Sequence record: NC_048048.2
Length of the DNA: 64,000 nt
Strand: one strand, 5' to 3'
Position numbers and translations under genes: made by a program. Shown one piece after another: positions 22,779 through 50,636 of the stretch (its first letter is position 1; each line of letters starts with the position of its first letter). The notes under the pieces were generated by a model that ran no database searches, was not told the DNA's origin, and was given only the letters and a program-made list of their open reading frames with translations.

Positions 22779-23107
22779 CCGAGATCGCACACTATCGGCA
22801 TCCAGCCCAAAGCACGCGTTGGGAAACGGATTTCTATGTCTTCGCCAAGGTCGAGTTTCCTTCGAGCCAGGGTAAACCGATGTTCGAGGAAGTCGTCTGG
22901 GGCTCCGACTTCGCCAGGACCGGATGGCGCAAGGTCAATGCCGAAGGTGTCAGTCCGGTCGGTTTCGCGCGCCGCGAGGATGCCGACAAGGATGTGATGT
23001 CCGATCGCGCGCGCTGGTTCAACGGCCAGGAACTCACCGCCGTCCACGATTTGCGCTTCCTCAAGCGCACCGTCGTCACCGCGACCTATTACGAGGACGT
23101 TCCGTGA
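22775..23107 (+). CDS. hypothetical protein
   Basis: shares DxxxxHDL/IEFLxxxxT tail with N-half of 22104. Confidence 0.65.
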   Translation: MTEIAHYRHPAQSTRWETDFYVFAKVEFPSSQGKPMFEEVVWGSDFARTGWRKVNAEGVSPVGFARREDADKDVMSDRARWFNGQELTAVHDLRFLKRTVVTATYYEDVP

Positions 23108-23406
23108 CCGCCGACCTCGAAGTGATTCTGCGCACCTACCACAAGTCCGGCCGCAACGGCGACCGGGCCATGCGCGACACGCCCTACCGCGACTACGAGG
23201 TCGTCCTGCGCCGCGTCGCCGATCGCGTCGAGGTCCCCGTCCGCCTCTTCGATGGATATGACAGTTTCAACGTTTCGATCCGCTCTGATCAGCACCGCCT
23301 CGCCGATGCCCTGGCAAACCAGTTGGCCGACTTCTTCCACACGTCCGTCATCCGCGAAGACTATGAGCCCCAGGTCACCACGACCTGGGTCAAACGAGAA
23401 CAGTAA
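23104..23406 (+). CDS. hypothetical protein
   Basis: GTGA overlap. Confidence 0.7.
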   Translation: MTADLEVILRTYHKSGRNGDRAMRDTPYRDYEVVLRRVADRVEVPVRLFDGYDSFNVSIRSDQHRLADALANQLADFFHTSVIREDYEPQVTTTWVKREQ

Positions 23407-23416
23407 GGGGGAACCC

Positions 23417-24022
23417 ATGGACCGCCGTTCATTCTTGGCCGCAGGCCTCGCTACCGCCCTGGCGCCGGCCATCGCCCAGGCCTATCCGCTCACCGATCCG
23501 ACCAAGCTGATCGATAGCTTCCTGATCGACCGTGTCACCAGCGGTGATCTGGCCTTCCAGCCCAAGACGCCGGCCATGCTCTCCCTGGCCCGCAATATGA
23601 CCAGTCGCCTCTTCATGGAGCCGGTGGACACCACCTCCTATCGCCTGTCCGACTGGGGCGTGCAGCGCGGTCACTTCCTGCTGGTCGACCGTCTGTTCGA
23701 TCCCTCCAAGGGTGGCGCCAAGAAGCTGATCCGTGACGTCTACGCGCTGAGCAAGGAACACCACCGTGATCCTGCGGGGCGGCGCTTCGTGCCCGTCACC
23801 GGCGGCCGTGATCGTGATCTGATCGCCCGCATGCAGTCGCGCGATCGCGCGCCCGGCGGCATCGTCACCACCACCCTGACCCGCGCCCAGGCCCAGCAGA
23901 ACGACTGGCGCATGGCCTTTCTGCGCGCCGGCCGCCTGCGTCCGTCGGGCTACCTGCACACCAGCGACATCCTGCTGCTGGAGCCGACAGCGGCCTTCCC
24001 CAAGCTGACGCGTGTGGCATGA
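23417..24022 (+). CDS. Tat-signal protein, paralog family A
   Basis: MDRRSFLAAGLATALAPAIAQA| signal; GGGGGA SD. Confidence 0.75.
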   Translation: MDRRSFLAAGLATALAPAIAQAYPLTDPTKLIDSFLIDRVTSGDLAFQPKTPAMLSLARNMTSRLFMEPVDTTSYRLSDWGVQRGHFLLVDRLFDPSKGGAKKLIRDVYALSKEHHRDPAGRRFVPVTGGRDRDLIARMQSRDRAPGGIVTTTLTRAQAQQNDWRMAFLRAGRLRPSGYLHTSDILLLEPTAAFPKLTRVA

Positions 24023-24336
24023 TCCCGCCTCCGATCGTCCAGGACCAGCATAAGGTCGAGACCTACTTCGTCGTCCACGCCCAGGCGCGGTCGACCAAGA
24101 ACGGCAGCGTCTGGCCGATCTACCTCGCAGGTGACCGGGTCCTGAAGGGCTGGGCGCAGTATCCCTACCACATGACCGGCGACCCGCCGTTTCGGTTCCA
24201 GGCCATAGAGGCGGCTAGGGCCGCCGCCGCCAAGGACACCGTCGGCTACAAGGTCGAGAACATCGTGGTCACCGAGCACGTTGTCGATACCCGCACCACC
24301 ATCAGGACGATCGATCACCGATGCACTACGACCTGA
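24019..24336 (+). CDS. hypothetical protein
   Basis: ATGA overlap. Confidence 0.7.
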   Translation: MIPPPIVQDQHKVETYFVVHAQARSTKNGSVWPIYLAGDRVLKGWAQYPYHMTGDPPFRFQAIEAARAAAAKDTVGYKVENIVVTEHVVDTRTTIRTIDHRCTTT

Positions 24337-24575
24337 AGCAAGAACTGTGCATCATGGGCGAGGACGTGGAACGCGACCTCGACGTCCATGGCGGCTTCGA
24401 TTGGATGGTGCTGTCCTATTCTGCGACCATCTTCTCCCATCCTGTCCTTGTCGAGCGCTTCGAATCCGAGGAGATAGCGATCCTCGCGGGACGCCAGCGG
24501 ATCGAAGATGGCTATCGCCATGTCGACGTCGTCAAGCAAGTCGCCTATTCCTGTGTCCCCTGGATCGAGGACTGA
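24321..24575 (+). CDS. hypothetical protein
   Basis: ORF. Confidence 0.6.
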   Translation: MHYDLKQELCIMGEDVERDLDVHGGFDWMVLSYSATIFSHPVLVERFESEEIAILAGRQRIEDGYRHVDVVKQVAYSCVPWIED

Positions 24576-24578
24576 CCC

Positions 24579-25328
24579 ATGAGCATCACCCGCCGCGCCA
24601 TCCTGGCCTCCGCCGGCCTTGCCGGAGCCCTCTTCGCCGTGCCGGCGATCGCCAAGGCGCCGGTGAGCGAGCGCATCGAAAAGTGGCTGGCCCAGATGGT
24701 CCACGACGGCAACTACTCGGTCCATGTCCAGGCGGTCGATCCCGAGGTGCTGGAAGCCTTGCGCGCCGGCGCGCTCGCTGAGCAGCATGACGCCTGGGTC
24801 CCTGACAGTCCCTCCAACGTCGTCACCATCTCCCGCCGCGACATGGTTCGCCTGACGCCGCGCGGCGTCGAGATGGGACAGGTCTTCCTGGCCGCCCGCC
24901 TGGGCCTGCACGCGCGCTACCTGATGGCCCAGGCGATCGACACCAAGCCCGCCAAGCCGGGCTATGCCTACAAGGTTTTGCGCGGCAGCGAGGCCGAGAA
25001 CGCCAACTTCAAGCGGTTGTTCGGCAAGGCCTATTCCAACGGCGCCTTGCCGCGCACGGTCTTGACGCCCGAGCAGGCGGCCAAGGGTGACTGGCGCATG
25101 GTCCTGCTGCGCGAGGCCTATCTTCGCTCCGTCGCCGCTGGCTCGACTCTCATCGCCCTGGAGCGCACACCCGCCGGGCAGGACTGGTATCAGGCCTGCC
25201 TGATCGACCAGCAGTACGATCGCGTCGAGGCGCGCCTCAAGAAGATGGGCATCAAACCTGTCTTCGACATGAACCGGGCCGAGGCCTTCATGGTCGACTT
25301 TGGTCGCGGCAAGATCGTGGGCGCCTGA
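24579..25328 (+). CDS. Tat-signal protein, paralog family A
   Basis: MSITRRAILASAGLAGALFAVPAIAKA| signal. Confidence 0.75.
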   Translation: MSITRRAILASAGLAGALFAVPAIAKAPVSERIEKWLAQMVHDGNYSVHVQAVDPEVLEALRAGALAEQHDAWVPDSPSNVVTISRRDMVRLTPRGVEMGQVFLAARLGLHARYLMAQAIDTKPAKPGYAYKVLRGSEAENANFKRLFGKAYSNGALPRTVLTPEQAAKGDWRMVLLREAYLRSVAAGSTLIALERTPAGQDWYQACLIDQQYDRVEARLKKMGIKPVFDMNRAEAFMVDFGRGKIVGA

Positions 25329-25654
25329 TGATCGATCGTCGCGCCCTCCTGGCGGGCCTCTTCACCGCACCCGTGACCCTGCCGGCCATCGCCCAGGCCC
25401 TGCCCGTCGATCCCGATCCGGGGCCGGGCAAGATGTACCTTGGCGTTGATCCAGGCGCCCGCGACTTCGGCACCGCGATCTGGATGGTGCAAGACACGAA
25501 CGGCGCCTACAGGATCACCTGCCACAAGAGCCAAGGTGGGACCTGGGACGACGCCGTCTACCTCTCGACCGACGGTGTCAACCAAACCAAGCTGATGCCC
25601 GGTCAGAGCCTGATCCTGCGCGGTAACGGCGTCATGGAGCACCTGCGTCGATGA
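25328..25654 (+). CDS. Tat-signal protein
   Basis: MIDRRALLAGLFTAPVTLPAIAQA| signal. Confidence 0.7.
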   Translation: MIDRRALLAGLFTAPVTLPAIAQALPVDPDPGPGKMYLGVDPGARDFGTAIWMVQDTNGAYRITCHKSQGGTWDDAVYLSTDGVNQTKLMPGQSLILRGNGVMEHLRR

Positions 25655-26037
25655 CCGAGCAATTCACCGTCGAGGAGATCGACCGCTTCCGCCAGTGGTA
25701 CAACCACATGGAGGACAGCAATTTCGACTACATCGAGGCCGAGGACGCGCAGTTGGCGATCAAGGTCCACGACCTCGTGGGCCGGCGCGTCAGCAGCCGC
25801 ACGCGCGACCTTGCCTTCCCGCCCAAGCACTTCCTGCTCTCCTTCGACGAGGAGGACATGCGCGCCCAGGACTCGGTGTCGGTGACCCTGACCCTGATCA
25901 CCATCCTCAAGCACCGAGGCATCGCCTTCGACATCACTTCGGAGTCGACGATCACCCTGGCCTGCGCCGCCGAGACGCTCGACGAGATCATGCCCGATCT
26001 CCCCGGCTGGCGTCACGCGCCTCTCTACCAGTTCTGA
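25651..26037 (+). CDS. hypothetical protein
   Basis: coupled ORF. Confidence 0.7.
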   Translation: MTEQFTVEEIDRFRQWYNHMEDSNFDYIEAEDAQLAIKVHDLVGRRVSSRTRDLAFPPKHFLLSFDEEDMRAQDSVSVTLTLITILKHRGIAFDITSESTITLACAAETLDEIMPDLPGWRHAPLYQF

Positions 26038-26049
26038 GCGGACCTGCCC

Positions 26050-26268
26050 GTGACCATCTTCATCGATCAAGTCATCCCGGCCGCTGCGCGCACGCCCCTT
26101 TTCGTGGTCTGCCTGACGCCGCTGAACGAAACCGCGCCGCTCGTCTATGAAACGCGTCCCACCCGCAAGGAGGCCGAGGACTTCGCCTATGCCAGCCTGA
26201 GCCGAGGCTACCGCCGCGCCGATGTCTTCGAACAGGTTCCCGTCGCTTCCTATAGGATCGAGCGATGA
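26050..26268 (+). CDS. hypothetical protein
   Basis: ORF. Confidence 0.65.
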   Translation: MTIFIDQVIPAAARTPLFVVCLTPLNETAPLVYETRPTRKEAEDFAYASLSRGYRRADVFEQVPVASYRIER

Positions 26269-26603
26269 GCGCGCCCGCACCGCCCGGCGATCTCGTCGGC
26301 AATGGCGACGCCGTCTGGGGATGGGCCGATCGCCTGTCCAGACATACCCACGACCTGCACAAGAGCCGCGAGCTTTGGCAGCAGATCGTCCAGGGCGACA
26401 TGTTCTGCGGCTCGTGTCGGCTGTGGATGACCAAGTCCTGTCCCCGTGAGCACAATGACGGTCTCTCCGGCTACAGCCGAGGTCCGTCCAGCGGAGCCTT
26501 GAAGTGCAGTCAGTACCAGATCAGCCCGTCGGCGGCGAAGCTCCTGGAGGAGCGCAAGGCGCAGTACCAGGAAGTGAGCCTGCGCCTCAAGGCTGGTGGG
26601 TAG
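26265..26603 (+). CDS. hypothetical Cys-containing protein
   Basis: CGSCxxWxxxxC...C. Confidence 0.65.
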   Translation: MSAPAPPGDLVGNGDAVWGWADRLSRHTHDLHKSRELWQQIVQGDMFCGSCRLWMTKSCPREHNDGLSGYSRGPSSGALKCSQYQISPSAAKLLEERKAQYQEVSLRLKAGG

Positions 26604-26977
26604 ACTGGTCCTATGAGGACGGTCTTCGCCAGCAGGAGGCTCGCCGCGAGAAGTGGTTCCAGAACCTGCTGATCAACGCCTCCTGGGACGCCTTGGCCAA
26701 GATCGCCTGCCCCGACGAAGGGCTGCGCGGCATCGCCCATGATGGTCAACTCTTCTGGTGGAACCCCTGGCTGGCCACCCACGGCGACGCCATGCGTTGG
26801 CTGGACAAGCGCGGTTTCGAGGGCCGCGACGCCTGCATCGAGATGCACTTCGACGAGGACGGCAGGCTCTATCTGACGGCCTGGGACCAGACGACCTATG
26901 ACGAGGCCCTGGCCCACCCGTCGCTGAATGGCAAGACCTGCAAGCCCTACCGGGCGCGGCGAGGCCTGCCGCGCTAG
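26504..26977 (+). CDS. hypothetical protein (start uncertain)
   Basis: coding-like from ~26600; only in-frame standard start overlaps upstream gene. Confidence 0.55.
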   Translation: MQSVPDQPVGGEAPGGAQGAVPGSEPAPQGWWVDWSYEDGLRQQEARREKWFQNLLINASWDALAKIACPDEGLRGIAHDGQLFWWNPWLATHGDAMRWLDKRGFEGRDACIEMHFDEDGRLYLTAWDQTTYDEALAHPSLNGKTCKPYRARRGLPR

Positions 26978-26992
26978 TCTGGCACGAGCCGC

Positions 26993-27031
26993 TTGACAGC
27001 CCTCCGGCACTGTGCGAGAAAGCTGTTGACG
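26993..27031 (+). promoter_or_regulatory. promoter, same class as cassette promoters
   Basis: TTGACA-N15-GCGAGAAA then gctg-TTGACG. Confidence 0.6.
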
Positions 27032-27051
27032 CAGCCGCCCGGAGGACCTCG

Positions 27052-27558
27052 ATGATCACCGCACTTCAGCTTCAGAACGCCCTGGGCGCCAACGGCTTCG
27101 TGCATGTTCGCACGTCCAAGCCCGGCCAGATCGTCAAGCTGATGCGCACCGTCGAGGGTCTGGCGGTCAAGACGCCCCAGGGCGAGTTCAAGGAATTTTC
27201 CGCCAACGCCTGGAAGCGCGTCGCCGCCTTCGTCAACAAGCAGTTTGGCCTGCGGCGCCCGCCGGCTCCGCGCCTGGACGCGGACGAGCGCTTCGAGCGC
27301 GATCGCCGACTGGCCGACCAAGCCGATGATCGGCTGCGCGAGTTCGACTACACCCTGATGTGGCGTAATCAATACGCCAGCGGCTCCGATCATCGTTCGT
27401 TCGGGGCATGCCACGCCGTCGATCGCAGGGGGCTCAATACCCTCTGTGGCCGCAAGGTCCCCCAGCACCTGACCACCTACGAGGTCGACAATCTCGACTG
27501 CCGTCAGTGCATCAAGATCGAGCGCAAGCTGAAATCCCTGGTCTCCAAGGTCTACTAA
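27052..27558 (+). CDS. hypothetical protein, C-terminal Zn-binding motif
   Basis: CH...LCG...CRQC. Confidence 0.7.
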   Translation: MITALQLQNALGANGFVHVRTSKPGQIVKLMRTVEGLAVKTPQGEFKEFSANAWKRVAAFVNKQFGLRRPPAPRLDADERFERDRRLADQADDRLREFDYTLMWRNQYASGSDHRSFGACHAVDRRGLNTLCGRKVPQHLTTYEVDNLDCRQCIKIERKLKSLVSKVY

Positions 27559-28638
27559 GTGCTGCCTGTCGACACCCACGCCAAACTCCTCACCCGCGAC
27601 CAGTTCCGCGAGGGCGTCTTCGCGCGCGATGGATACGCCTGCGTCTTCTGCAAGCGCACCGCCGAGGAGACCAAGGAAGGCAAGCTCGACGCCCACCACA
27701 TCCTGGAGCGCCGGCTGTTCCAGGCCCCGCACGAGAAGGGCGGCTATTTCCTCAACAACGGCGCCACGGTCTGCGAGCACCATCATCGCCTGTGCGAAGC
27801 GACGCAAATCTCCACCGACGAGGTCTATGCCGCCTGCGGCATCACGCGGCGCGTCCTGCCCGATCACCTCTACAGCGACTTCGACTACGACAAGTGGGGC
27901 AACATCGTTCTGCCGACCGGCGAGCGCCTGAAGGGCGAACTCTTCAGCGACGAGTCGGTCCAGAAGGTCATGGCCGAGGCCTCGCCGCTGCCGGTCTTCA
28001 AGCACTACGTCAAGTACCCCCGCACCAATCACCTGCCCTGGTCGCCCGGCCTCAACGACGATGACCGGGTGCTCAAGGACATGGGCGCCTTCATAGGCGA
28101 GCGGGTGATCGTCACCACCAAGATGGACGGCGAGCAGACCAACATGTACCGGGACCACTTCCACGCCCGGTCGGTCGAGAGCGCCCACCACGAAAGCCAG
28201 GGCTGGGCCAAGAACTTCTGGTCGCAGATTTGCGGTGACATTCCCGAGGCATGGCGCGTCTGCGGCGAGAACCTCTACGCCAAGCACTCGATCGCCTACG
28301 ACAACCTGCCCACCTACTTCATGGGCTTTGGCGTCTGGACCGATCTCAACGTCTGCCTCTCCTGGGACGACACCCTGGAATGGTTCGAGCTTCTGGGCGT
28401 CACGCCCGTGCCGGTGATCTATGACGGCGTCTATGACGAGAAGCTGATCCGGGGGCTCTACGACGAGAAGACCTGGGACACCTGCGAGGGCTATGTCATG
28501 CGCGTGGCGCGGTCCTTCTCCTATGGCGAGTTCCGTTCCTGCGTGGGCAAGTTCGTCCGCGCCGGCCACGTCCAGACCACCAAGCACTGGAAGCACGGGC
28601 AGCGGGTCGAGAAGAACGGCCTGCTGGTCAGCCCTTGA
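27559..28638 (+). CDS. HNH endonuclease-RNA ligase fusion
   Basis: N-term RDGYACVFC...DAHH...NGATVCEHHH; C-term KYPRTxHLPWS, KMDGE (motif I), GEN, FxGF, EGYVMR. Confidence 0.8.
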   Translation: MLPVDTHAKLLTRDQFREGVFARDGYACVFCKRTAEETKEGKLDAHHILERRLFQAPHEKGGYFLNNGATVCEHHHRLCEATQISTDEVYAACGITRRVLPDHLYSDFDYDKWGNIVLPTGERLKGELFSDESVQKVMAEASPLPVFKHYVKYPRTNHLPWSPGLNDDDRVLKDMGAFIGERVIVTTKMDGEQTNMYRDHFHARSVESAHHESQGWAKNFWSQICGDIPEAWRVCGENLYAKHSIAYDNLPTYFMGFGVWTDLNVCLSWDDTLEWFELLGVTPVPVIYDGVYDEKLIRGLYDEKTWDTCEGYVMRVARSFSYGEFRSCVGKFVRAGHVQTTKHWKHGQRVEKNGLLVSP

Positions 28639-29102
28639 CGCAGGACCTCCTGGCCCTGGCGCGCCAACGGCGCGAGGAGATGTACGCGCGCATCGCCGCG
28701 CGGATGAACGTCGACTACGCCGTTCAGGCGCCGCCCCCGGAGGCTGGTGACCAAGGCCACTGGCGTCGGCGCCCCGGCGACAAGACGCGCCTCTCCCTGG
28801 TCCGCGAGGTCCAGAAGAACCGCTGCTATCTGTGCGGCAATCCGATGTCGCCAAAGGCCCGTCGCAAAGCCTCCGCCAGTCGCGACCATGTCGTGGCCAA
28901 GGCGCGCGGCGGCAAGAACGCCGAAAACATCCTCCTGGCCCACACCCGTTGCAACAGCGAGCGAGGCTCCCGCCGCGCCTATCCGTGCGAACTGATCTAT
29001 CTCCAGGCCGTCAATCTCGTGCTCGACGCGAGGATGAGGCGCAACAAGCCGCGCGGACATCGCTTCGCCGCCAAGCTGCGCGCCTTGATGGAGGGCTCGT
29101 GA
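28635..29102 (+). CDS. HNH endonuclease
   Basis: CYLCG...RDHVVAKARGG...N...HTRCN. Confidence 0.8.
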   Translation: MTQDLLALARQRREEMYARIAARMNVDYAVQAPPPEAGDQGHWRRRPGDKTRLSLVREVQKNRCYLCGNPMSPKARRKASASRDHVVAKARGGKNAENILLAHTRCNSERGSRRAYPCELIYLQAVNLVLDARMRRNKPRGHRFAAKLRALMEGS

Positions 29103-30214
29103 AGACCTTTAGGACCAATCGCATCCGTCTAGGCCAGTTTCGCATCCGCGATCGTAGCAACCAGCGCGCCAAGACCGCGATCATGGGCGCGGTGATCGAA
29201 GCCCAGGGTAAGCCGCGCAAGCGCGCCGCCATGCTGGAGGCGGAAAACCACGCCAAGCGCTATCGAGCCCCGCGCGACCTGGGCGAGGTCCTGCCCAAGC
29301 ACGGGCCGCCGGCCCCAGAGCCGCCTCCCCCGGAAAAGAACTGGCGCTCCAAGCCTCGGCCTCGATACGACATCGACCATCTGGTGTCGGTCTATCTTGA
29401 TCACCGCCGATCGCTGGCCAGAGCCGCGCGCGCCCTGGAGATGCACCCCTCGACCCTGCAAGCCAACCTCAAGCGCCATAGGCCCGAGGTCCTCCTGCCG
29501 AAGGGTCAGCGCTACGATCACGACGCCGCGCTCGAATGGCTCCAGGCCGGCGGGCAGATCGAGGACGTCGCCGCCGCCTTCGCCGTCACGCCGACCATGA
29601 TCGAGGCGATGCTGAAGGCCCGCGCGCCTGACCTCCTGCCGACCAAGCGTGAAGTCGACGAAGACGCCGTCCGCGCCGCCTATCTCGTCTCGGACCTGGA
29701 CTTTGGCGACTTCGCCAAGCAGCAGGGCTTGACTCCGCACCGCGCGCGTCGGATCACCAAAGGCCTGAAGCGGCCCTATCGGCGCCACAAAGCCTACACG
29801 ATCTCCGCGCGCGACGTGGCGATCCTGGCCAAGTTCGATCAGGAAGGCCTGTCGACACGCACCCTGGCCAAGGTCTTCGGAGTAAGCGCCCAGCGCATTT
29901 CTCAAATCCTGCTCAAGCACGGTCGCAGCCCCAGCCACCATAAACAGCAGAATCAATTCGCCGAACGTCACGCCCGCAAGGAAGCCAAGGCCAAGGCGCG
30001 CGCCGCCCAGAAGGCGGCCTTCAAGGCCAAGCGCGACGCCGACGGGTTCAGGCGCTACGACATCGCCAAGGCCCGCGCCCTCTATCTGGAGGGGCTGTCC
30101 CAGACCGAGGTCGCCCGCCGCGTCGGCGTCCATCCCGTGACCATTCACCTCATGGTCCATCGCGACTTTCCCGAGATCGTCGCCGAACGCGCCCGTCTGC
30201 GAAAGAAGGCTTGA
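29099..30214 (+). CDS. multi-HTH DNA-binding protein
   Basis: several HTH-like repeats (SLARAARALEMHPSTL; STRTLAKVFGVSAQRISQIL; SQTEVARRVGVHPVTI). Confidence 0.7.
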   Translation: MKTFRTNRIRLGQFRIRDRSNQRAKTAIMGAVIEAQGKPRKRAAMLEAENHAKRYRAPRDLGEVLPKHGPPAPEPPPPEKNWRSKPRPRYDIDHLVSVYLDHRRSLARAARALEMHPSTLQANLKRHRPEVLLPKGQRYDHDAALEWLQAGGQIEDVAAAFAVTPTMIEAMLKARAPDLLPTKREVDEDAVRAAYLVSDLDFGDFAKQQGLTPHRARRITKGLKRPYRRHKAYTISARDVAILAKFDQEGLSTRTLAKVFGVSAQRISQILLKHGRSPSHHKQQNQFAERHARKEAKAKARAAQKAAFKAKRDADGFRRYDIAKARALYLEGLSQTEVARRVGVHPVTIHLMVHRDFPEIVAERARLRKKA

Positions 30215-30249
30215 CCTTGCTCCGGCATCGTGCGAGAACCCTGTTGACA
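30211..30249 (+). promoter_or_regulatory. promoter, cassette class
   Basis: TTGACC-N15-GCGAGAAC then cctg-TTGACA. Confidence 0.55.
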
Positions 30250-30287
30250 CGCCGACAGGCGCCAACCGCGAACGGAGGGCCAAGACC

Positions 30288-30461
30288 ATGAAGACCGCTG
30301 ACCTGGGCCAGGGCTGGTACGCCAACGCCAACGACGATGGCAGCTTCACGATCCGCAATCCCGACAAGGGCCAGCGCATCAACATGACCGGCGAGGAGGC
30401 CAAGCGCTTCGTCGCCCTCTATCGCGAAGCCGAGGCGGAAGTCGCGGGTAAGGCCGACTAA
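30288..30461 (+). CDS. hypothetical protein (57 aa)
   Basis: GGAGG SD; not in ORF track. Confidence 0.7.
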   Translation: MKTADLGQGWYANANDDGSFTIRNPDKGQRINMTGEEAKRFVALYREAEAEVAGKAD

Positions 30462-30463
30462 TC

Positions 30464-30916
30464 ATGAAGCTTGGCCCCAACGACATGTTCGTCGTCCGTG
30501 ATGTCATGGGCGGCGTCGCCGTGGCCTTCCGCTCGGAGAGCGTCAGCGGCAACCAGAGCCACTCTCTGGACATCGCCCGCTTCGCCTTCGCGACCTATCC
30601 GACGATCGGGGCGGCCCAGGACGCCGCCCTGGCCCTGCGCAACAAGCTCAACGAGGCCCTGGTCAGCGAACGTCTGGCCAGTCTCGTCCTGACCTCGCCC
30701 GAGTGGGACCCCTTGCAGGTCTACATCACGGGCGATCAGGTCGCCTACAACGGCGAGGTCTTCGAGTATTGCGAGGCCGAGCCGACCCGGCTGGGGAGCG
30801 CTCGCCCCGACTACTCGCCCCGCTGGGAGAACGTCAAGAACATCGGCCGGCTCAACCATCGCCGCGCCGAACTGATCCGCCAAAACGCCACGCCAGAAGA
30901 GGAGTCTGCGTCGTGA
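30464..30916 (+). CDS. protein with CBM5/12 (ChtBD3)-like module
   Basis: WDPLQVYITGDQVAYNGEVFE...P...W. Confidence 0.55.
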   Translation: MKLGPNDMFVVRDVMGGVAVAFRSESVSGNQSHSLDIARFAFATYPTIGAAQDAALALRNKLNEALVSERLASLVLTSPEWDPLQVYITGDQVAYNGEVFEYCEAEPTRLGSARPDYSPRWENVKNIGRLNHRRAELIRQNATPEEESAS

Positions 30917-31431
30917 ACCACAACGAAATGGCCGTCCTCTACGTCACCGACCGCTGCGATGACGACGGCGACACCTACATCTTCCTGACCTTCGACAACG
31001 AAGACGAGGCCAATGCCCTGGAGCGCCGGCTGTCGTCGGCCCTGTCGCGCACCCACAGCAACGACGGCCTCTCGTACGAGGCCTATCGCCGCCGGCGCCT
31101 TGCCGCGCTCGTCGAGGTCGAACCGGCCCTGGACAGCTTCTCGCCTTTCCACGAGATGAACCACCAGCGCATGTCGTTCCACGTCGACGTGGTCCCGCTG
31201 CGGCAGGCGCCGCGCACTCGCATGCAGGTCAGCCAGCACCAGCCCTCGGCGATCGCCCAGGACATCGGCCGCCAGGAGATCGACTCGCTGCGCCTCGCCG
31301 GCATGAACGTCGAGCGCGCCCTGCTGGAGCACGCCTATCACATCCTGCTGGCGGACATGCCTCGGCATGAGATCAACGACAGCGCCACCATGGCCGCCAT
31401 CCGCGCGGTCGTCATCGACAAGGTTGCCTGA
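30913..31431 (+). CDS. hypothetical protein
   Basis: GTGA overlap. Confidence 0.7.
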   Translation: MNHNEMAVLYVTDRCDDDGDTYIFLTFDNEDEANALERRLSSALSRTHSNDGLSYEAYRRRRLAALVEVEPALDSFSPFHEMNHQRMSFHVDVVPLRQAPRTRMQVSQHQPSAIAQDIGRQEIDSLRLAGMNVERALLEHAYHILLADMPRHEINDSATMAAIRAVVIDKVA

Positions 31432-31432
31432 C

Positions 31433-31750
31433 ATGGACATGTTCGAAAACGCCACCAACATCGCCTGCGCCGTGATGGCCGTATGGTTCGCCGGCGCCGT
31501 CTGCTATCTGGTCGTCATGATCGCCCTGGCGTTGATTTCCAATGCGATCAGCGCGACGTTCAAGTGCGAGAGCGCCCTGACCGCCGCGATCGGCGTGCAG
31601 ATGGACCGCTTCGGCTACGACGCCAACGCCCTGACGGTCGCGGCCGTCTGGTTCATCGCTGTCCCGTTCCACATCCTGTGGACGATCACCGACACGATCA
31701 AGGCCCTGCGCGCCAAGAAGCCCTCGGAGCCCTACCAGGGCTGCGTCTGA
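31433..31750 (+). CDS. membrane protein
   Basis: 2 TM segments. Confidence 0.7.
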   Translation: MDMFENATNIACAVMAVWFAGAVCYLVVMIALALISNAISATFKCESALTAAIGVQMDRFGYDANALTVAAVWFIAVPFHILWTITDTIKALRAKKPSEPYQGCV

Positions 31751-31753
31751 CCC

Positions 31754-31933
31754 ATGATCACCGCGCAGGAAGAACGCGACGCCCGCGAGGAGGGCTGGCA
31801 GGCGGCCAAGGCCGGCAAGCGCAAGTCCTCCAATCCCCACTTCGGGACGCGCGGGCGCGCCTGGGCGCAAGGCTGGATCGCCGGCAAGGATGACAGCGAG
31901 ACGCCGCAGCGGCCTGACCTCGACGAGGCGTGA
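31754..31933 (+). CDS. Rmf/CrpP-fold-like small protein
   Basis: EGWQAAKAGK...NPH...AWAQGW; not in ORF track. Confidence 0.55.
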   Translation: MITAQEERDAREEGWQAAKAGKRKSSNPHFGTRGRAWAQGWIAGKDDSETPQRPDLDEA

Positions 31934-32030
31934 GATCGTGATGGCCTGAGGCCGTGACGAAGTGAGAGTTTGAAGTCGCGAGCGGGTCGCCGAAGGCGGC
32001 GCGTGATGCGTCCATAAGCAAGGAACCCAG

Positions 32031-32945
32031 ATGACAGACGCTGTGACGGGCAAGGACCTCTACGAGCAGGAGGTCAACAACGCCAACATCCACTCCAACC
32101 GCATGTACGCCTGGGACGAACTGACGCCCCTGCTCAAGGCGGAGTGGAACCACAAGGCCGCCCAGATGGCAGCCAACAAGGCCCCGCCCGTCGAGCCGCC
32201 AATCACCCCGCTCGACCGCGACATCCTCGACCTCTTCCAGGAAGAGGGCGCCGAGACGATCCTGGAGCTTATCCCGCTCCTGCTGCAACTGATCCGCGCC
32301 ATCGCCCAGGTCCAGAAGACCGCCTCCAAGGTCCAGCGCTTCGGCAACGTCAAGAACCCGTTCGCCGGCGACGGCGTCAAGCCCAACTTCGAACTGCTGG
32401 AGGACGAGCTTGGCGACATGCTGACCCTGGCCGGCATCCTCGGTTCGCGCGGCATCATCAACAAGGAGCGCGTCGACGCCCGCATCGCCTGGAAGACCGG
32501 CATGCTCAAGACCCACGGCTCGATCGACTGGACCAAGCTCGACCTGCCCGAGAACCAGCCGCGCACCTTGAAGGACGCCACCGACGAGGACTTGGCCGGC
32601 CCGAACTTCGGCGGCTATGTCAACAAGGCGCCCTACCAGGAAATGCGGCTGCGCCAAGCCATGACCGGCAACAACGCGCCGGCCGAGAAGGACTGGGTCG
32701 AGGCCCTGAAGGTCCTCAACGCCTTCCTGCGCCTGACGCCCGAGGAACTGGGCCACCGCCAGGAAATGGCGATCGTGCGCAAGGGCAGCGGCTTCCCGGC
32801 CAGGGACTTCAACGACTACCCACTCGAACACCAGAACGAGATCAAGCGCCGAGGCGCGGCGATCCTGGACATGCTGTTCGACCGCAACATCGCCGATGCG
32901 CTGGGCCTGTCCGCCGACGACTTCACGTCGCAAGAAAACGGTTGA
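32031..32945 (+). CDS. MazG-like NTP pyrophosphohydrolase domain protein
   Basis: QEEGAE...SKVQRFG...EDELGD. Confidence 0.6.
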   Translation: MTDAVTGKDLYEQEVNNANIHSNRMYAWDELTPLLKAEWNHKAAQMAANKAPPVEPPITPLDRDILDLFQEEGAETILELIPLLLQLIRAIAQVQKTASKVQRFGNVKNPFAGDGVKPNFELLEDELGDMLTLAGILGSRGIINKERVDARIAWKTGMLKTHGSIDWTKLDLPENQPRTLKDATDEDLAGPNFGGYVNKAPYQEMRLRQAMTGNNAPAEKDWVEALKVLNAFLRLTPEELGHRQEMAIVRKGSGFPARDFNDYPLEHQNEIKRRGAAILDMLFDRNIADALGLSADDFTSQENG

Positions 32946-32970
32946 CACCCTCCGCCTAGCGTGGGACAAG
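32933..32970 (+). promoter_or_regulatory. promoter, cassette class
   Basis: AAGAAAacggTTGACA-N15-GGGACAAG; contains upstream stop codon. Confidence 0.6.
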
Positions 32971-33001
32971 GGCGCATCGCTGAACAACCAAGGAGACGCC
33001 C

Positions 33002-33373
33002 GTGCTGCAAATGGTGAAACTGGACCCACGCATCGGCGTGCTTCAGACCGAACGCGGCACGGCCTTCTACGCCTATCCCGGCGGCTATGACGCCCCGCCC
33101 GTGCGCGGCAGCCGCGAGAAGGTCGAGTACGCCCTGGGCCTGCGCCGGCGCTTCAATGCGCTGGGCGACGTCCCCTTCGGTCCCTACCTGACCGTCTATG
33201 ACGTCGAGGTCACGGTGCGCTACCGCCATCGGCGCGTCAGCCGCGCGCCCTTCCGGTTCGAAGGTATCCGCGCCCCGTCCAAGTCGGCCGCCAACCAGGA
33301 AGCCCGTCGCCTGCTAAAGCACGGTCACGGCGGCCTGCCGTTGTGCAAGGCCACCCTGCGCGTGGAGCACTAA
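33002..33373 (+). CDS. hypothetical protein
   Basis: AAGGAG SD, GTG start. Confidence 0.7.
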   Translation: MLQMVKLDPRIGVLQTERGTAFYAYPGGYDAPPVRGSREKVEYALGLRRRFNALGDVPFGPYLTVYDVEVTVRYRHRRVSRAPFRFEGIRAPSKSAANQEARRLLKHGHGGLPLCKATLRVEH

Positions 33374-33376
33374 GCC

Positions 33377-33745
33377 ATGAAGACGACCCACAAGCTCACC
33401 CAGGAAGAAGCCAACCTGATCCGCACCACCGCCTGCAAGAAGGTCGGGCGCGGGCGCGTCAAGCTGGAAGTCAACGTCCGCGCCGACGACTTCGGCGGCG
33501 AGGGCTTCAACATGCTGGCCATGAACGGCCAACACGAGATGATCGACACCGTGCCCTGGAGCCGGTTCCGCAGCCGTGTCTTCCCGCTGGTCGACGGCGC
33601 CGCCATGCTCGACGTGGCGATCCAGTCCTCGCACAACGATGGCGACGGCCCCGAACTGCTCGACCATGTCAAGCCGGTCTGGGAGAACGGCGTGCTGGTG
33701 CGGATCGAAGGCTATCAGCGCATCCTGTGGCAGCGCGCCGCGTGA
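33377..33745 (+). CDS. hypothetical protein
   Basis: ORF. Confidence 0.7.
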   Translation: MKTTHKLTQEEANLIRTTACKKVGRGRVKLEVNVRADDFGGEGFNMLAMNGQHEMIDTVPWSRFRSRVFPLVDGAAMLDVAIQSSHNDGDGPELLDHVKPVWENGVLVRIEGYQRILWQRAA

Positions 33746-33972
33746 GTCGCCTGGACCCCAAGGACCGGTTCTGGGCCGGCGGCAGCGGCGAAGGCTGGTT
33801 CGTCAAGTTCCACCGCGAGCCGTCCTGGCATCCGGGCGCGCCCGAGGAAAGCACGATCGCCGTCTTCGCCGCGCGCGACTACGTCGATGGCGAAACGGGC
33901 GCCGCCAAGGCCGCCAGCGCCCTGGCCGCCGATCTGAATCAAGCCCTGGACAAGGTGCGTACGAGCGCATGA
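33742..33972 (+). CDS. hypothetical protein
   Basis: GTGA overlap. Confidence 0.65.
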   Translation: MSRLDPKDRFWAGGSGEGWFVKFHREPSWHPGAPEESTIAVFAARDYVDGETGAAKAASALAADLNQALDKVRTSA

Positions 33973-34442
33973 CCGAGCCCGTCATTCCTTCCCTGACGCT
34001 TCTGGCCCTGCTGCGCGAGGCCCAGTCGAGCGTGATCCTGTCCTGCGGGACCGAGATCAACTACATCGACGCCGACGTGCTGGTGGCCAACGTGGCCGAG
34101 TACATCAGCGATCACACCGTCTCCTGGCTGGAGCACCTGCTGGTCGGCGTCCACGTCACCGAGGCCGAGCAAGAACTGTCGATCGGGCAGAACGACCCGG
34201 AGTTCCCGACCTATGTGGGCCTGCGCATCTGGGCGCACCGCGTCGAGGGCAAATGGAACCGTGACTTTCTCACCATGCTGCGCGCCCGGCCGGTCCAGCA
34301 GTCTCCCGCCATCAAGGATGCCCTGGCCGACCCCGACCCCGCCGACTGGGCGGTCAAGCGCTACCTGAACAAGGGAGACGTCATCGTCCGCCTCAACAAG
34401 GACGGCGTGATCGTCGACGTCGAGGCCGTCAAGCTGGTCTGA
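33969..34442 (+). CDS. hypothetical protein
   Basis: ATGA overlap. Confidence 0.7.
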   Translation: MTEPVIPSLTLLALLREAQSSVILSCGTEINYIDADVLVANVAEYISDHTVSWLEHLLVGVHVTEAEQELSIGQNDPEFPTYVGLRIWAHRVEGKWNRDFLTMLRARPVQQSPAIKDALADPDPADWAVKRYLNKGDVIVRLNKDGVIVDVEAVKLV

Positions 34443-34444
34443 CG

Positions 34445-34678
34445 ATGAACCGCAAGCCCCGTCCCGTCAGCGTGCGCGGCAAGGCCGAACTGGTCGAGGG
34501 CACCAAGGTGCGCTTCATCTGTCCGCTGGGCCACACCCAGGTCGAGGACCTGGGCCGCAAATCCTTGCCGCTGCCCAGGCGCTACTCGGCCGAGGCGGTC
34601 AAGCGGCTGGCCCACTGGTGGCGCCAGGGCGTCACCTTCGACTGCAAGCGCTGCACCAGGGACAACCACAAGACTTAG
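34445..34678 (+). CDS. hypothetical Zn-ribbon protein
   Basis: CPLGH...CKRC. Confidence 0.65.
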   Translation: MNRKPRPVSVRGKAELVEGTKVRFICPLGHTQVEDLGRKSLPLPRRYSAEAVKRLAHWWRQGVTFDCKRCTRDNHKT

Positions 34679-34740
34679 GTCGATTAAATAGACTCGATAC
34701 TGTCAATCACGTCACGGTGTCATTTCGGCTTGCATAGTCG

Positions 34741-34755
34741 TTAATCATGCCTTAA
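34741..34755. promoter_or_regulatory. CtrA box
   Basis: TTAA-tcatgcc-TTAA upstream of Tat gene 34786. Confidence 0.6.
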
Positions 34756-34785
34756 AAGGGACCCTAAATCCAGAGGGACCTTCAC

Positions 34786-35568
34786 ATGACCACCCGCCGC
34801 GCTCTCCTCTCCGCTGGTATGGCCCTGGCCGCCACGTCGGCCATACCGGGTATGGCTGCCGCCAAGACCCTGAAAAACAAGGACGATTTCGATAAACGCG
34901 TCCTCGACGTCCTGGCCAACGGCGCCAAGACGGGCGGCGGGTTCCAGGAAAATCTCGACCGCGATGTCGCCGACTATCTGGTCAAGCATACCCTGGCCTA
35001 CGGCATCACCCTCAAGAGCTTCGGCGACTACCACGTCGCCAACACCACCAAGCCCACGACCGTCGACATCTACGGCCTGACCAAGGAAGGCCTCCAGGCC
35101 GGCAACATCGTCCTGGCCGATCGCCTCTCGCCTGACGCCGGCGCCATGCTGCGCAAAGCCTTCGCCCACCGGGTCCCCGCCGGCGCGAGCCCTTGGGGCA
35201 CGCGGGCCGACGTCGTGCGCAACCTCTACGCCCACTTGACCGGTCCCACCCACGAGGGCCGCTTGCCGGTCGCGCCTCTGGTCCTGAACGAGACCACCTA
35301 CCGCAAGGACTACATCCTCGAAAATCTGGAGAAGGGCGCCCTGCGGCCGGCCAAGTGGTCGGGGGATTCCTACGCCGAAGGCGGCATCCTCTGGGTCGAG
35401 CGCACCCCCACCTTCCTGATCGGCCGGGACTTCCACGACGGCATACACTGGGAGATCGACTCCGTCGCCCTCAACAAGGACATCGTCCAGTTCCAATCCC
35501 TGCCGGCCCACGAGCGCGACACCTACCGCCGCCTGATCACCGCGTACGCGCCCGGCCTGTTCGGCTAG
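34786..35568 (+). CDS. Tat-signal protein, paralog family A
   Basis: MTTRRALLSAGMALAATSAIPGMAAA| signal. Confidence 0.75.
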   Translation: MTTRRALLSAGMALAATSAIPGMAAAKTLKNKDDFDKRVLDVLANGAKTGGGFQENLDRDVADYLVKHTLAYGITLKSFGDYHVANTTKPTTVDIYGLTKEGLQAGNIVLADRLSPDAGAMLRKAFAHRVPAGASPWGTRADVVRNLYAHLTGPTHEGRLPVAPLVLNETTYRKDYILENLEKGALRPAKWSGDSYAEGGILWVERTPTFLIGRDFHDGIHWEIDSVALNKDIVQFQSLPAHERDTYRRLITAYAPGLFG

Positions 35569-35764
35569 CAGCGCATCCCGCGACGCGGTTCGCCCACCTC
35601 AGGGTCGAAGTGTGCCGCGCGAAGCGCTCGCGTTATGGTATTTCAAAGTTGCCTAACGGTTGCCGTATCAACAGGTTTTCTCAATTTCTGAGAGTCATCG
35701 CCCGGCGGCCGTCTTGGCACGCCCCCGCGAGGCGATCTCTCATGACCCGAGCCCAGGAGGTCCC

Positions 35765-36031
35765 ATGCCACGCGGCGGCGTCCATCGCTATGTGATCGGC
35801 CAGCGCTGGTACTCCAGCCAGGAAGTCCAGAGCCTGATCGTCGAGACCCTGCCCAAGCTGCCGGCCGGCGGGCGCACAGCCGCCAAGCTCGATCTGGCGT
35901 TCGGCTCGGTCGATCTGGCCCAGACCACCATCTCGGCCATGCTCAAGAAGCTCGCCGCCCAGGGCCGCGTGCGCAAGGTGCGGCACGGTCACTACGAACT
36001 CCCCTCCCGAACCAGGGCCTCCCATGACTGA
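35765..36031 (+). CDS. winged-helix DNA-binding protein
   Basis: GGAGG SD; ISAMLKKLAAQGRVRKVRHGHYEL. Confidence 0.65.
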   Translation: MPRGGVHRYVIGQRWYSSQEVQSLIVETLPKLPAGGRTAAKLDLAFGSVDLAQTTISAMLKKLAAQGRVRKVRHGHYELPSRTRASHD

Positions 36032-37196
36032 ACCCAAGAAGCGCGGCCGACCTCCCGGCGAAGCCAACCTCAAGCGCCGCGTCGCCGGCAAGGCCTACGG
36101 CACCCGCGAGTTCAAGAACCTCGTGCTGGAGACGATCAAGCAGGTCCCGACCGGCGAGCAGACCATCGACGGCATCCTGAAAATCTGGGGCGACCCGCTC
36201 TGGCACGAGGCCGAAGCCAAGCTCGACCTGCGCCGGGTGATCAGCCGCTTCCACGACCAGGGCAACCTGATCCGCATCGATCGCGGCGTCTACGAGGTCG
36301 CCGAAATCCTCAAGCTGACCGCCAGCCACGACATCCAGCTTCTCGCCGAGCAGGCCCTGCGCGAGGCCGGCGGCTTCATGAAGGCCAAGGCCCTGCGCAA
36401 GGCGCTCGGCTATAGCTCCCAGGACGCGGTCAACGCCAATCTGTTCACCGCCCTGCGCATGGAAGGCTCGCGCATCCGCCGCGACTGCCACGAGCGCTAC
36501 ACCTACAACCTGCCCGAACCGGACCTCAAGCGCCTGATCCTGCCGCCGATCTGGGCCAGCGCCTACTATCGCGGCGTCTATCTCGGCGCGGCCCCCTCCC
36601 CCGAGCCGGGCGCGACGCCGTGGATGGAGTTCTTCGACAGCCACATCGCCAAGGTCGGCGAAGCCCTCTACCTGTCGCGCAAGGCCGCCGGCGCCGAACT
36701 GGAAGACGTCCTCGACTATCCGGCCATCACCAAGGCCCTGGACGCCGCGCGCATCCGCAACCCCGCGCGCCTGACCAATCGCGAGATCATCCGCCAGATC
36801 GAGGAGATGCCCGACAACATCATCGTCGTGGGTCACCGCGAGACGCGGGCCGGCAAGCTGGTCGAGATCAGGGCCACCACGCCGCGCGACGAAAGTGATC
36901 CGCGCCTCGTCGACATCCGCAACGTCCGCCTCGACATCCTGGCCAACCTGGAAAGCCCGCGCCCCGACCAGCTTCATCCTGAGCACTTCGACCGCTTCGA
37001 CTACGAGAGCCTGGGCCGCGACTTCTTCGAAGCCTGGGGCAGCGTGTTCCATATCGACCCCGTCGCCCTGTCGTGGGGGAACCTTGGCCTGCGCGAAGAC
37101 GGCGGCTGGCACAGCGTCAAGGGCAGCAAGCTGACCACCAACGTCACGGCGCTGGACGGCGGCTGGGAAGAGGAGCCCGACGCCGAAGGCGATTAA
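36024..37196 (+). CDS. tandem winged-helix protein, N-terminal AT-hook-like
   Basis: KRGRP; ISRFHDQGNLIRIDRGVYEV; second wHTH-like unit. Confidence 0.7.
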   Translation: MTEPKKRGRPPGEANLKRRVAGKAYGTREFKNLVLETIKQVPTGEQTIDGILKIWGDPLWHEAEAKLDLRRVISRFHDQGNLIRIDRGVYEVAEILKLTASHDIQLLAEQALREAGGFMKAKALRKALGYSSQDAVNANLFTALRMEGSRIRRDCHERYTYNLPEPDLKRLILPPIWASAYYRGVYLGAAPSPEPGATPWMEFFDSHIAKVGEALYLSRKAAGAELEDVLDYPAITKALDAARIRNPARLTNREIIRQIEEMPDNIIVVGHRETRAGKLVEIRATTPRDESDPRLVDIRNVRLDILANLESPRPDQLHPEHFDRFDYESLGRDFFEAWGSVFHIDPVALSWGNLGLREDGGWHSVKGSKLTTNVTALDGGWEEEPDAEGD

Positions 37197-37339
37197 GGGC
37201 GCGCCTCACCAGCAAAAATCAGCAGTTCAATCCAGTTGTTGACTATAAGCATAGAATAAAGACTAGGCTCCGAGCCCCAGCAAACACTGGGCCGGGGCCT
37301 ATTTGCTGCGCCCAGGGCTGCGCGCCGCACACCACCTTC

Positions 37340-37628
37340 CCCCAGAAAGCTAGACGCATATATTGTAGATTAAAAGACGAGCATAAAGGCTAGGGCAGGA
37401 GGGCTGAACACCACCTTCCCCCAGAAAGCTAGACACACATATTGTCGATTAAACGTAGAACATAAAGGCTAATGGGATGCAGGCCCATCTGTGGGACACA
37501 GGGCTTGCCCCAGAAAGCTAGACACACATATTGTCATCTAAACGTATAGCATAAAGGCTAATGCACCTCACACCATACAGGGCATAGGCTGTGCCTTTCA
37601 ATGAACCACACTACCATTTAGCCTTTAT
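37340..37628. repeat. three 53-bp direct repeats plus inverted half-copy (iteron-like)
   Basis: CCCCAGAAAGCTAGACRCAYATATTGT...CATAAAGGCTA at 37340, 37419, 37508; inverted ATAAAGGCTA 37619-37628. Confidence 0.9.
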
Positions 37629-38004
37629 CTTCTACTTATAAATAACAATATTCTCACTCTATGGGGTAAGGAAAATAGGAATCTAGTATAGAAGAGAGTA
37701 GTAGGGATTGTGCAGCGTATGGTTGTATGGTTGCCAGATCGAATGGGCGTCAGGGAGACACGGAAGAGGCCCGCTCCGCGTAGGACGACACTGAGGGGTC
37801 GGTTTGAACTTCCGCTGAAATGCGCACTCAGACTGCTCAAATTCGGTAATCCCTAAACCGGGGACGGTCGACACCAGAAGACGCGACCGGCGAAGGAGGG
37901 CGCAGCCCGAGTGAGGTGGGAGGCGTAGCAAACCTATGGACCTCTGCTTCCCAACCATAGGACCTCCTGGTTCAAACCTCTGGACCTCCTGGCGTAGCGA
38001 CGCT

Positions 38005-38050
38005 CGAAGATGGAGGCCCTGAAGATGGCGGCCCTGAAGATGGAGGCCCG
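38005..38050. repeat. 3x 15-bp tandem repeat
   Basis: GAAGATGG(A/C)GGCCC(T/G) x3. Confidence 0.8.
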
Positions 38051-38191
38051 ACCGGCGATCGAGGCGCAGCCGAGGAGACGGGATGGGATGGGAAAGGATT
38101 CATGACCCGATGTCGCGTTTCTTGACGTGTGTCACGTGACGTGTCATGAAGGTTACCGAAGATGGTTAATGCGCCATCCAAGGACCACCCG

Positions 38192-48622: not shown

Positions 48623-48848
48623 TTAAGGTTAACGGCGGATTAACCATACGGCGAGTAAGGTTAATTTTCAAGGTTAACGGGTAGGATGAACGAACGTGGT
48701 TAACGGGCCTTAAGGTTAAATCTTAAGGTTAACAGGCGTTAAGGTTAACGCTTAGGGTGAAAAATTAAGGTTAACGCGCCCGGCCGGACCGCCCAGGCCC
48801 TACCGGCGCCGTTAAGGTTAACGCCAGGGGTCGAATCGTTAAGGTTAA
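48623..48848. promoter_or_regulatory. dense CtrA-type site cluster
   Basis: 7 exact TTAAGGTTAA plus TTAA-cggcgga-TTAACCAT at 48629. Confidence 0.8.
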
Positions 48849-48853
48849 CACCC

Positions 48854-48970
48854 AAAAACAGCGAAAATCAGCAAAAATCGTCCAAAAACAGTGAAAATCA
48901 GCGAAAAATAGCGCTTTTCAGCCTGAAAATCGCAAAAAATCCGTGTTTTGGCCCATTTTTGGGTCATTTT
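48854..48970. other. phased A/T tracts (predicted intrinsic curvature)
   Basis: 12 A4-6/T4-5 tracts at ~10-bp spacing. Confidence 0.75.
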
Positions 48971-49039
48971 CGCGCTCTGACCCGCTTCTGGGCCAGCCCG
49001 AACGGGCGCCGGCCGGGTCGTGATCCCCCGGCCGGTGGG

Positions 49040-49102
49040 TCAGTGGAGAATCCAGAGCAACAGCGCCAGAGCCGCCAGTGACCAGCCGTTCAGCAATTTC
49101 AG
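49040..49102 (-). CDS. 20-aa hydrophobic peptide, copy 1 (CTG start)
   Basis: (L/M)KLLNGWSLAALALLLWILH; GAGAGG 7 nt upstream; homologous to 59365 and 63104. Confidence 0.55.
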   Translation of the reverse strand: MKLLNGWSLAALALLLWILH

Positions 49103-49188
49103 GTGTGCGCCTCTCTCGTCTGCCGTGGCCGCTCGCCACGCTTCCTTCATCGCATACAAGAAAACTGTTGCCAAGCCCCAAAGATCGC

Positions 49189-49216
49189 TTGACAGCATAA
49201 AAGCCCAATGCGACAA
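49189..49216 (+). promoter_or_regulatory. cassette promoter P1
   Basis: TTGACA-GCAT-N9-ATGC-GACAA. Confidence 0.8.
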
Positions 49217-49245
49217 GGGGACATCCAAACGGGAGACACCCCCCA

Positions 49246-49818: not shown

Positions 49819-49850
49819 AAAGCCCGCCCAGGCCTCCCCGGCCTGGGCGT
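49817..49850. terminator. hairpin/terminator
   Basis: GCCCAGGCC-tcccc-GGCCTGGGC. Confidence 0.6.
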
Positions 49851-49867
49851 GAGCCCTCCAGGGGCCG

Positions 49868-49904
49868 TTAAGGTTAACGCCAGGGGCCGGGACGTTAAGG
49901 TTAA
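49868..49904. promoter_or_regulatory. two CtrA-type half-palindromes
   Basis: TTAAGGTTAA at 49868 and 49895. Confidence 0.65.
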
Positions 49905-49929
49905 GGCCGAAAATAGTGCGAGAAACCTG

Positions 49930-49958
49930 TTGACACGCATTGCGGCCCTATGCGAGAA
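49930..49958 (+). promoter_or_regulatory. cassette promoter P2
   Basis: TTGACA-CGCAT-N9-ATGCG-AGAA. Confidence 0.8.
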
Positions 49959-49988
49959 CAAGGCTCCACTTCATGAGGAGCGCCAAGC

Positions 49989-50615: not shown

Positions 50616-50636
50616 ACCAAGGAAAGGACCCCTTCC

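Follow-up and report, generated by a model that had tools for sequence, protein, structure and literature searches.

A phage-restricted protein family with a conserved twin-arginine-type signal in giant Caulobacter phages

Giant Caulobacter phages encode a real, previously undescribed and phage-restricted family of small proteins that carry a conserved signal peptide of the twin-arginine translocation (Tat) type. In Caulobacter phage CcrSC (MH588547.2 / NC_048048.2, 317,489 bp), three paralogues of this family, gp229, gp226 and gp205, lie within the 64,000-nucleotide stretch of DNA that was analysed, hereafter the window. The window corresponds to bases 248001-312000 of the record, and a record position minus 248,000 gives the window position used below unless stated otherwise. 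Over its bases 23000-36000, the window is 100% identical to CcrSC, a Bertelyvirus of the Dolichocephalovirinae whose host is C. vibrioides CB15. An initial annotation, made from the letters of this DNA, had quoted four N-termini as Tat signals. All four are present on the + strand, in the annotated genes gp229, gp226, gp225 and gp205, and each presents a Tat-like start, in which a twin-arginine motif is followed by a stretch of weak hydrophobicity and by a cleavage site of the AxA type. The four genes are as follows (aa, amino acids; pI, isoelectric point).

23417..24022, + strand: gp229 (HOU03_gp229; 201 aa), the minimal-length form of the family; signal predicted at 23417-23482 (22 aa), then the mature domain at 23483-24019 (179 aa; pI 10.5; without Cys)
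24579..25328, + strand: gp226 (249 aa), a member extended at the C-terminus; signal predicted at 24579-24659 (27 aa), then the mature part at 24660-25325 (pI 9.3)
25328..25654, + strand: gp225 (108 aa), outside the family; a Tat-like signal at 25328-25399, then a Pro-rich linker and a small domain
34786..35568, + strand: gp205 (260 aa), a member extended at the C-terminus; signal predicted at 34786-34863 (26 aa), then the mature part at 34864-35565 (pI 7.3)

Three paralogues of a family restricted to giant Caulobacter phages

The initial annotation described three of these genes as diverged paralogues that share a mature domain and have retained the signal, and for gp229, gp226 and gp205 pairwise BLASTP and profile searches agree with it. 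The three proteins match one another with E values of 1e-6, 4e-6 and 5e-3, at 24-28% identity over ~200 residues, and profile searches recover them all; taken together, the three are 22-28% identical. A tblastn search of 50,697 phage records found relatives in Caulobacter phages of two genera only: the Bertelyvirus phages CcrSC, CcrBL9, C1, J4, RB23 and BL47 carry three paralogues each and the Colossusvirus phages CcrPW and CcrColossus one member each, and no match was obtained in the phiCbK-type phages or in CcrBL10. The gp226 orthologues stand at 90% in CcrBL9, 39% in RB23, C1, J4 and BL47, 31% in CcrPW and 34% in CcrColossus (tblastn); the CcrBL9 orthologue of gp205, gp207, is 73% identical.

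An exhaustive search of 1.84 billion protein representatives, each scored with a profile built from the three mature domains, returned ten matches. Nine of them belong to giant Caulobacter phages or to three Logan contigs. The tenth, a 1960-aa HYR/SprB repeat protein of Bacteroidota, was rejected as a repeat artefact, in which a 40-residue stretch is matched ten times, and no cellular homologue was found among these representatives. One of the Logan contigs is phage-like and carries the same 359-aa RNA ligase downstream of a family member as CcrSC does, showing that this arm of the genome is syntenic across relatives. Word-indexed homologue searches, whose candidates were flooded by signal-peptide words, yielded only CcrSC, CcrBL9, C1-type phages and one Logan protein, and the matches in IMG/VR scans were the isolates themselves only.

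A conserved twin-arginine-type signal

All six frames were scanned for open reading frames of at least 60 aa from every ATG, GTG or TTG start, and a start was scored as Tat-like when an arginine pair (RR) was followed by two hydrophobic positions and then by at least 13 uncharged residues. Within the window, this rule singled out just the four genes and one out-of-frame reading frame without a cleavage site. Applied to the rest of the 317-kb genome in separate chunks, it flagged one further convincing annotated gene, gp318, together with two RR-bearing membrane proteins, whose segments are far more hydrophobic, and out-of-frame noise. gp318 (record 234269-234523, outside the window; 84 aa) occurs in CcrSC and CcrBL9 only; it has a Tat-like N-terminus and a Gly-rich stretch without a clear AxA site, and may be a membrane-anchored small protein.

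The arginine pair lies at residues 3-5 in the four window proteins and in all 13 full-length family members, which come from three lineages. The initial annotation had made its reading depend on conservation of the pair in homologues; in the survey, it is invariant in 13 of 13. This stands out in an alignment of these 13 sequences whose mean column identity is 35% and in which only 8 columns are invariant, both arginines among them; the signal columns have a mean conservation of 41% and the mature columns 31%. The residue before the pair is Asp, Thr, Ser or Asn, and the hydrophobic positions after it are kept across members. The default pattern of TatP, RR.[FGAVML][LITMVF] (PMC1182353), fits 11 of the 13 members and, among the window proteins, gp229, gp225 and gp205; in gp226 and its CcrBL9 orthologue, the first hydrophobic position is Ile, which the pattern does not allow. 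The uncharged stretch that follows is 19-31 residues long and rich in Ala, Gly and Thr. Its peak 11-residue Kyte-Doolittle mean is 1.7-2.4 in the members, compared with 2.5-2.7 in the two CcrSC membrane proteins that also bear RR. In every member the stretch is closed by a small-x-small (AxA-type) site, often with a Pro within the next three residues. The first 40 residues contain no Cys in any member; lipoproteins were thus rejected, as there is no lipobox Cys.

We put the probability that the family is exported by the Tat pathway at about 0.55, a figure that covers export and not role. Unlikely, yet to be taken seriously, is that the proteins reach the periplasm via Sec, the arginine pair being then an ordinary positive n-region in which Arg is owed to the GC-rich genome. 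Both estimates reflect four points that weigh against Tat export. Firstly, the curated Tat-signal models are not passed. gp229 matches Pfam TAT_signal (PF10518, a model of 21 positions) with 17.5 bits (E 0.004) and does not reach the cut-off of 22.7, such cut-offs being classifier thresholds and not biological definitions; the Pfam scan reported no PF10518 match for gp226, gp225 and gp205, and the NCBIfam scan of the four window proteins gave no match to a Tat-signal model. Secondly, the motif alone mislabels ~7% of Gram-negative Sec signals, and 13 motif-bearing Bacillus proteins are Sec substrates (TatP paper, PMC1182353). Thirdly, the composition of the genome (64% GC; 0.61-0.68 in the window) favours arginine over lysine, and so arginine pairs in n-regions. 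Fourthly, the 13 family members share ancestry and hence are not independent samples. Against the Sec route, both arginines are invariant though Lys makes up 28% of the basic residues in the mature parts of the same proteins, and Lys is never found at either signal position. The retained hydrophobic positions and the low hydrophobicity of the stretches also speak against Sec, as does the match to TAT_signal in 6 of the 13 members (E up to 10, with 2e-4 as the best), no other Pfam family being recurrent among them.

The N-terminal segment could also remain uncleaved, as a Tat- or Sec-inserted anchor that holds the domain at the inner membrane, on its periplasmic face. Tat signals that stay uncleaved are on record, Rieske proteins being an example (mentioned in PMC1182353), and the length of the uncharged stretch in some members, up to 31 residues, would suit an anchor, as would the gp318 N-terminus. 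We nevertheless consider an anchor improbable: a small-x-small site is present in all 13 members, and the peak hydrophobicity lies under that of the true membrane segments of this genome.

Start codons of gp229 and gp205

The initial annotation recognized that its reading would fall if the true starts lay downstream of the signals, and RefSeq/GenBank do use such starts: a TTG at 23435 for gp229 and an ATG at 34819 for gp205, either of which cuts off the arginine pair. On those starts the proteins would be cytoplasmic, and the apparent signals would be upstream read-through. The evidence points instead to the upstream ATGs. That of gp229 follows a G-rich Shine-Dalgarno-like run (23407-23411) by 5 nt and that of gp205 follows GAGGGA (34773-34778) by 7 nt, and the ATG of gp226 has GAGGA (24567-24571) 7 nt before it; a ribosome-binding site was looked for at the RefSeq starts of gp229 and gp205, and none is present. 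In CcrBL9, the annotated start of both orthologues is the arginine-bearing ATG. Furthermore, the first difference between gp205 and its CcrBL9 counterpart in the disputed N-terminal stretch is synonymous, and the signal N-terminus is kept in every homologue of the 13-sequence alignment. We therefore favour the upstream ATGs, and the RefSeq starts of gp229 and gp205 are probably mis-annotated, since the upstream ATGs have ribosome-binding sites and agree with CcrBL9. The practical outcome is that two RefSeq gene starts appear wrong. Proteins made from the RefSeq starts would, in addition, open with an uncharged hydrophobic stretch that suits neither a cytoplasmic protein nor a signal, and gp226 and all other members are without a comparable alternative downstream start. 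A cytoplasmic location of the family is accordingly a very remote prospect.

A mature domain without known relatives

The mature domain gave no credible family in Pfam, PHROG, NCBIfam or PADLOC, and a PDB sequence search with the paralogue profile gave nothing below E 0.1. The AlphaFold2 model of the gp229 mature domain, built from a seven-sequence alignment, has a pLDDT of 80.8 and a pTM of 0.79, and shows two modules in which helices precede a beta-hairpin. The gp205 model has the same order of elements plus C-terminal helices, at a pLDDT of 60, given which its fold search was counted as a negative result only. Foldseek searches of the PDB with the two models gave no match at E 1e-3 or better, all E values being above 0.1, and the BFVD search returned the protein itself and a paralogue, and nothing else. 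The weak matches are mostly winged-helix domains (MarR, IclR, the MCM8 WH domain, MukE, JetB, Nse and TFIIE), with ~65 residues superposed. The initial annotation had likened a motif of the shared domain to a winged-helix wing; the segment it quoted corresponds, in the gp229 model, to the second hairpin strand and the next helix of the first module. This remark is plausible but unproven: the two helix/hairpin modules and the prevalence of winged-helix domains among the weak matches, over ~65 residues, are in its favour, and the want of a significant match is not.

The mature domains contain at most one Cys (0-1) and no invariant Asp, Glu, His, Cys or Ser; outside the arginine pair, the alignment is invariant only in Leu, Gly and Arg columns and in a single Thr column. 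From this we infer that the domain would be a binding protein rather than an enzyme. The isoelectric point differs by clade, the gp229 and gp226 clades being basic (9.1-10.5) and the gp205 clade neutral (6.2-7.3).

The signals might, as a further possibility, be decoys that occupy TatC and block host Tat export while delivering no cargo. Nothing direct speaks for this; Tat is essential in Caulobacter, so a block would harm the host. A decoy has no need of a mature domain of ~180 aa that is confidently folded, has invariant positions of its own and is kept in all members, and the cleavage sites are conserved too; we regard decoys as barely credible.

gp225, a probable fusion of a signal to an unrelated gene

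The fourth gene of the initial annotation, gp225, is not borne out as a family member. Its start overlaps the gp226 stop and its signal is like those of its neighbours, with a 19-nt identity with gp229 across the cleavage region. What follows resembles the phage's own Dda-like helicase, gp494: residues 63-84 of gp225 match residues 395-416 of gp494 (BLASTP E 2e-5), in a C-terminal conserved motif, and there are weak matches to Pfam UvrD_C_2 and to the PHROG Dda-like helicase. RB23-type phages encode this piece as a 64-aa protein that lacks a signal (RB23 gp453). We thus rejected the gp225 signal as that of an independent fourth member. With its neighbour-like signal, its gp494-like residues and its signal-less RB23 counterpart, gp225 looks like a signal-coding 5′ end fused to an unrelated small gene, and its predicted export is more doubtful than that of the family.

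A CtrA box upstream of gp205

The initial annotation had noted a CtrA box directly upstream of the gene at 34786, and a consensus box, a predicted site, is indeed found there. Two features flank gp205.

34741..34755: TTAA-N7-TTAA box matching the CtrA-binding consensus, in a 107-nt intergenic gap and 31 nt before the ATG of gp205
35617..35633, + strand: terminator-like hairpin with a T-rich tail, 49 nt past the gp205 stop; possible end of a single-gene unit

The sequence TTAA-N7-TTAA occurs 12 times in the window, where 0.01 are expected, and the gp205 box is the only one outside the terminal repeat. It has already been listed as a predicted CtrA site for HOU03_gp205 (PMC9437464, supplementary file 21), and the same study reports that CtrA binds such sites in related phages. 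The CcrBL9 counterpart has one exact half-site and another with a one-base change. This putative box would also link gp205 to the cell cycle of the host. The hairpin is not above chance (1 site, with 1.1 expected in shuffles), and promoter and terminator scans were at chance level.

Eleven exact boxes also lie in the right terminal repeat, at 48629-63243, two of them as adjacent pairs, in agreement with the clusters of CtrA sites published for the terminal repeats of these phages (PMC9437464).

Genome setting

The four genes belong to a long + strand array of small genes annotated as hypothetical proteins. The only named genes nearby encode an RNA ligase and an HNH endonuclease:

27559-29102: gp219, RNA ligase (359 aa), then gp218, HNH endonuclease

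A Pfam scan of ten neighbouring genes gave no informative context. The family genes stand in a non-structural arm of the genome; the structural genes are at record 35-120 kb and the endolysin/spanin lysis cassette at record 123-125 kb, and the right terminal repeat starts at window position 45544. A lysis role was rejected on account of the distance from the lysis cassette (~150 kb). A virion role was rejected too: assembly takes place in the cytoplasm, with which export by Tat is incompatible, and the genes are in the non-structural arm.

Three other observations concern the window. Next to the family members lie small acidic proteins, gp227 in CcrSC (24321-24575) and gp451 in RB23, that look alike by eye, which suggests repeated small orphan families in the arm. 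Two adjoining tRNA-Arg genes (anticodons CCG and TCT; 1073-1226) are on the minus strand, opposite to the surrounding genes. Finally, ~1 kb at 37197-38191 is without an annotated gene, and no Rfam family or tRNA was detected in it; the 36001-38000 block has a GC content of 0.61, among the lowest in the window.

Proposed role and host context

Few phage proteins are known to act in the periplasm, the examples being in exclusion, lysis timing and receptor masking, and those that we know of use Sec-type or lipoprotein signals. The initial annotation took such a family to be undescribed, and this is supported: the members are all annotated as hypothetical proteins, they match no curated family, and no description of them was found. 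Phage-encoded Tat substrates are mentioned neither in a 2026 review of Tat, nor in the phiCbK genomics paper, nor in the results of full-text literature searches.

The host is well suited to such an export. According to the 2026 review, Caulobacter is among the organisms predicted to route up to a fifth of their secretome via Tat, the substrates being mostly enzymes without redox cofactors; many cofactor-less Tat substrates were predicted for Caulobacter crescentus by Dilks et al. 2003, as cited in PMC13673990 and PMC12911857. The Tat route fits this host, since it exports many cofactor-less proteins in this way. By the same token, Tat-like signals in a phage are a smaller surprise than first rated, because Caulobacter is a heavy Tat user and arginine is favoured over lysine in a GC-rich genome. 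TatABC is essential in Caulobacter and depletion strains have been published (PMC12911857); a tatC deletion, one of the checks put forward in the initial annotation, is therefore not feasible in this host.

If the Tat reading is right, gp229, gp226 and gp205 would each be made with a cleavable twin-arginine signal peptide and would fold in the cytoplasm; the host TatABC translocase would move the folded protein to the periplasm, signal peptidase I would cut it at the AxA-type site, and the mature protein would act there by binding. gp205 would be coupled to the cell-cycle stage at which CtrA drives the pilus and flagellum genes. Tentatively, and with doubt, the proteins may bind an envelope component and shield the infected cell, through superinfection exclusion or by masking the pilus/flagellum entry route. 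This role is a guess by analogy with T4 Spackle and RI and with T5 Llp, and no similarity to known exclusion proteins was found among PDB sequences, PDB and BFVD folds, PHROGs or PADLOC; both points count on the negative side. The wider proposal of the initial annotation, a system delivering effectors with exclusion, receptor interference, DNA binding or jamming of TatC, finds no direct support. In a bolder and decidedly improbable version of the exclusion role, the phage would have a set of basic, winged-helix-like proteins carried by Tat, already folded, into the periplasm, with CtrA timing one of them. By binding incoming nucleic acid, or the pilus/flagellar apparatus of entry, these proteins would bar any further infection of the cell. 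Were it true, no Tat-dependent mechanism of phage exclusion and no periplasmic use of a winged-helix-type fold would precede it.

Tat export of the family, if true, would mean that phages take over the way in which their host exports proteins. Caulobacter, whose Tat substrates are largely unstudied, would gain a compact natural set of them, and an envelope activity of the giant Caulobacter phages would be indicated.

Comparison with known systems

The family is closest in design to the cofactor-less Tat substrates of bacteria. Both carry an arginine pair at the N-terminus with hydrophobic positions after it, then an uncharged stretch of weak hydrophobicity and an AxA-type site, both are without a metal or cofactor motif, and the host machinery would be the same. 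The family differs in being encoded by lytic phages, in having no cellular homologue among the 1.84 billion representatives and in staying below the curated Tat-signal models.

T4 Spackle (PMC7677548), the T4 antiholin RI (PMC8385771) and the T5 lipoprotein Llp (PMC9586334) are periplasmic proteins of lytic phages that serve in superinfection exclusion or lysis control. Like them, the family consists of small non-structural phage proteins with an N-terminal signal, in the family a predicted one, to the envelope. Those three proteins act by binding and not by catalysis, as the family members presumably do. There is, however, no sequence or fold similarity between them and the family, and the family has three paralogues per genome.

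With winged-helix domains (MarR/IclR, the MCM8 WH domain and the tandem 'kite' proteins MukE, JetB and Nse), the models share the succession of helices and beta-hairpin and the two tandem modules, and the basic isoelectric point of two of the clades adds to the likeness. In contrast, every match is weaker than E 1e-3, the TM score is 0.2-0.3 for whole models and, on the target, up to 0.5-0.7 for the ~65-residue pieces that alone superpose, and the predicted location of the family is the periplasm, where a DNA-binding winged-helix protein is not expected.

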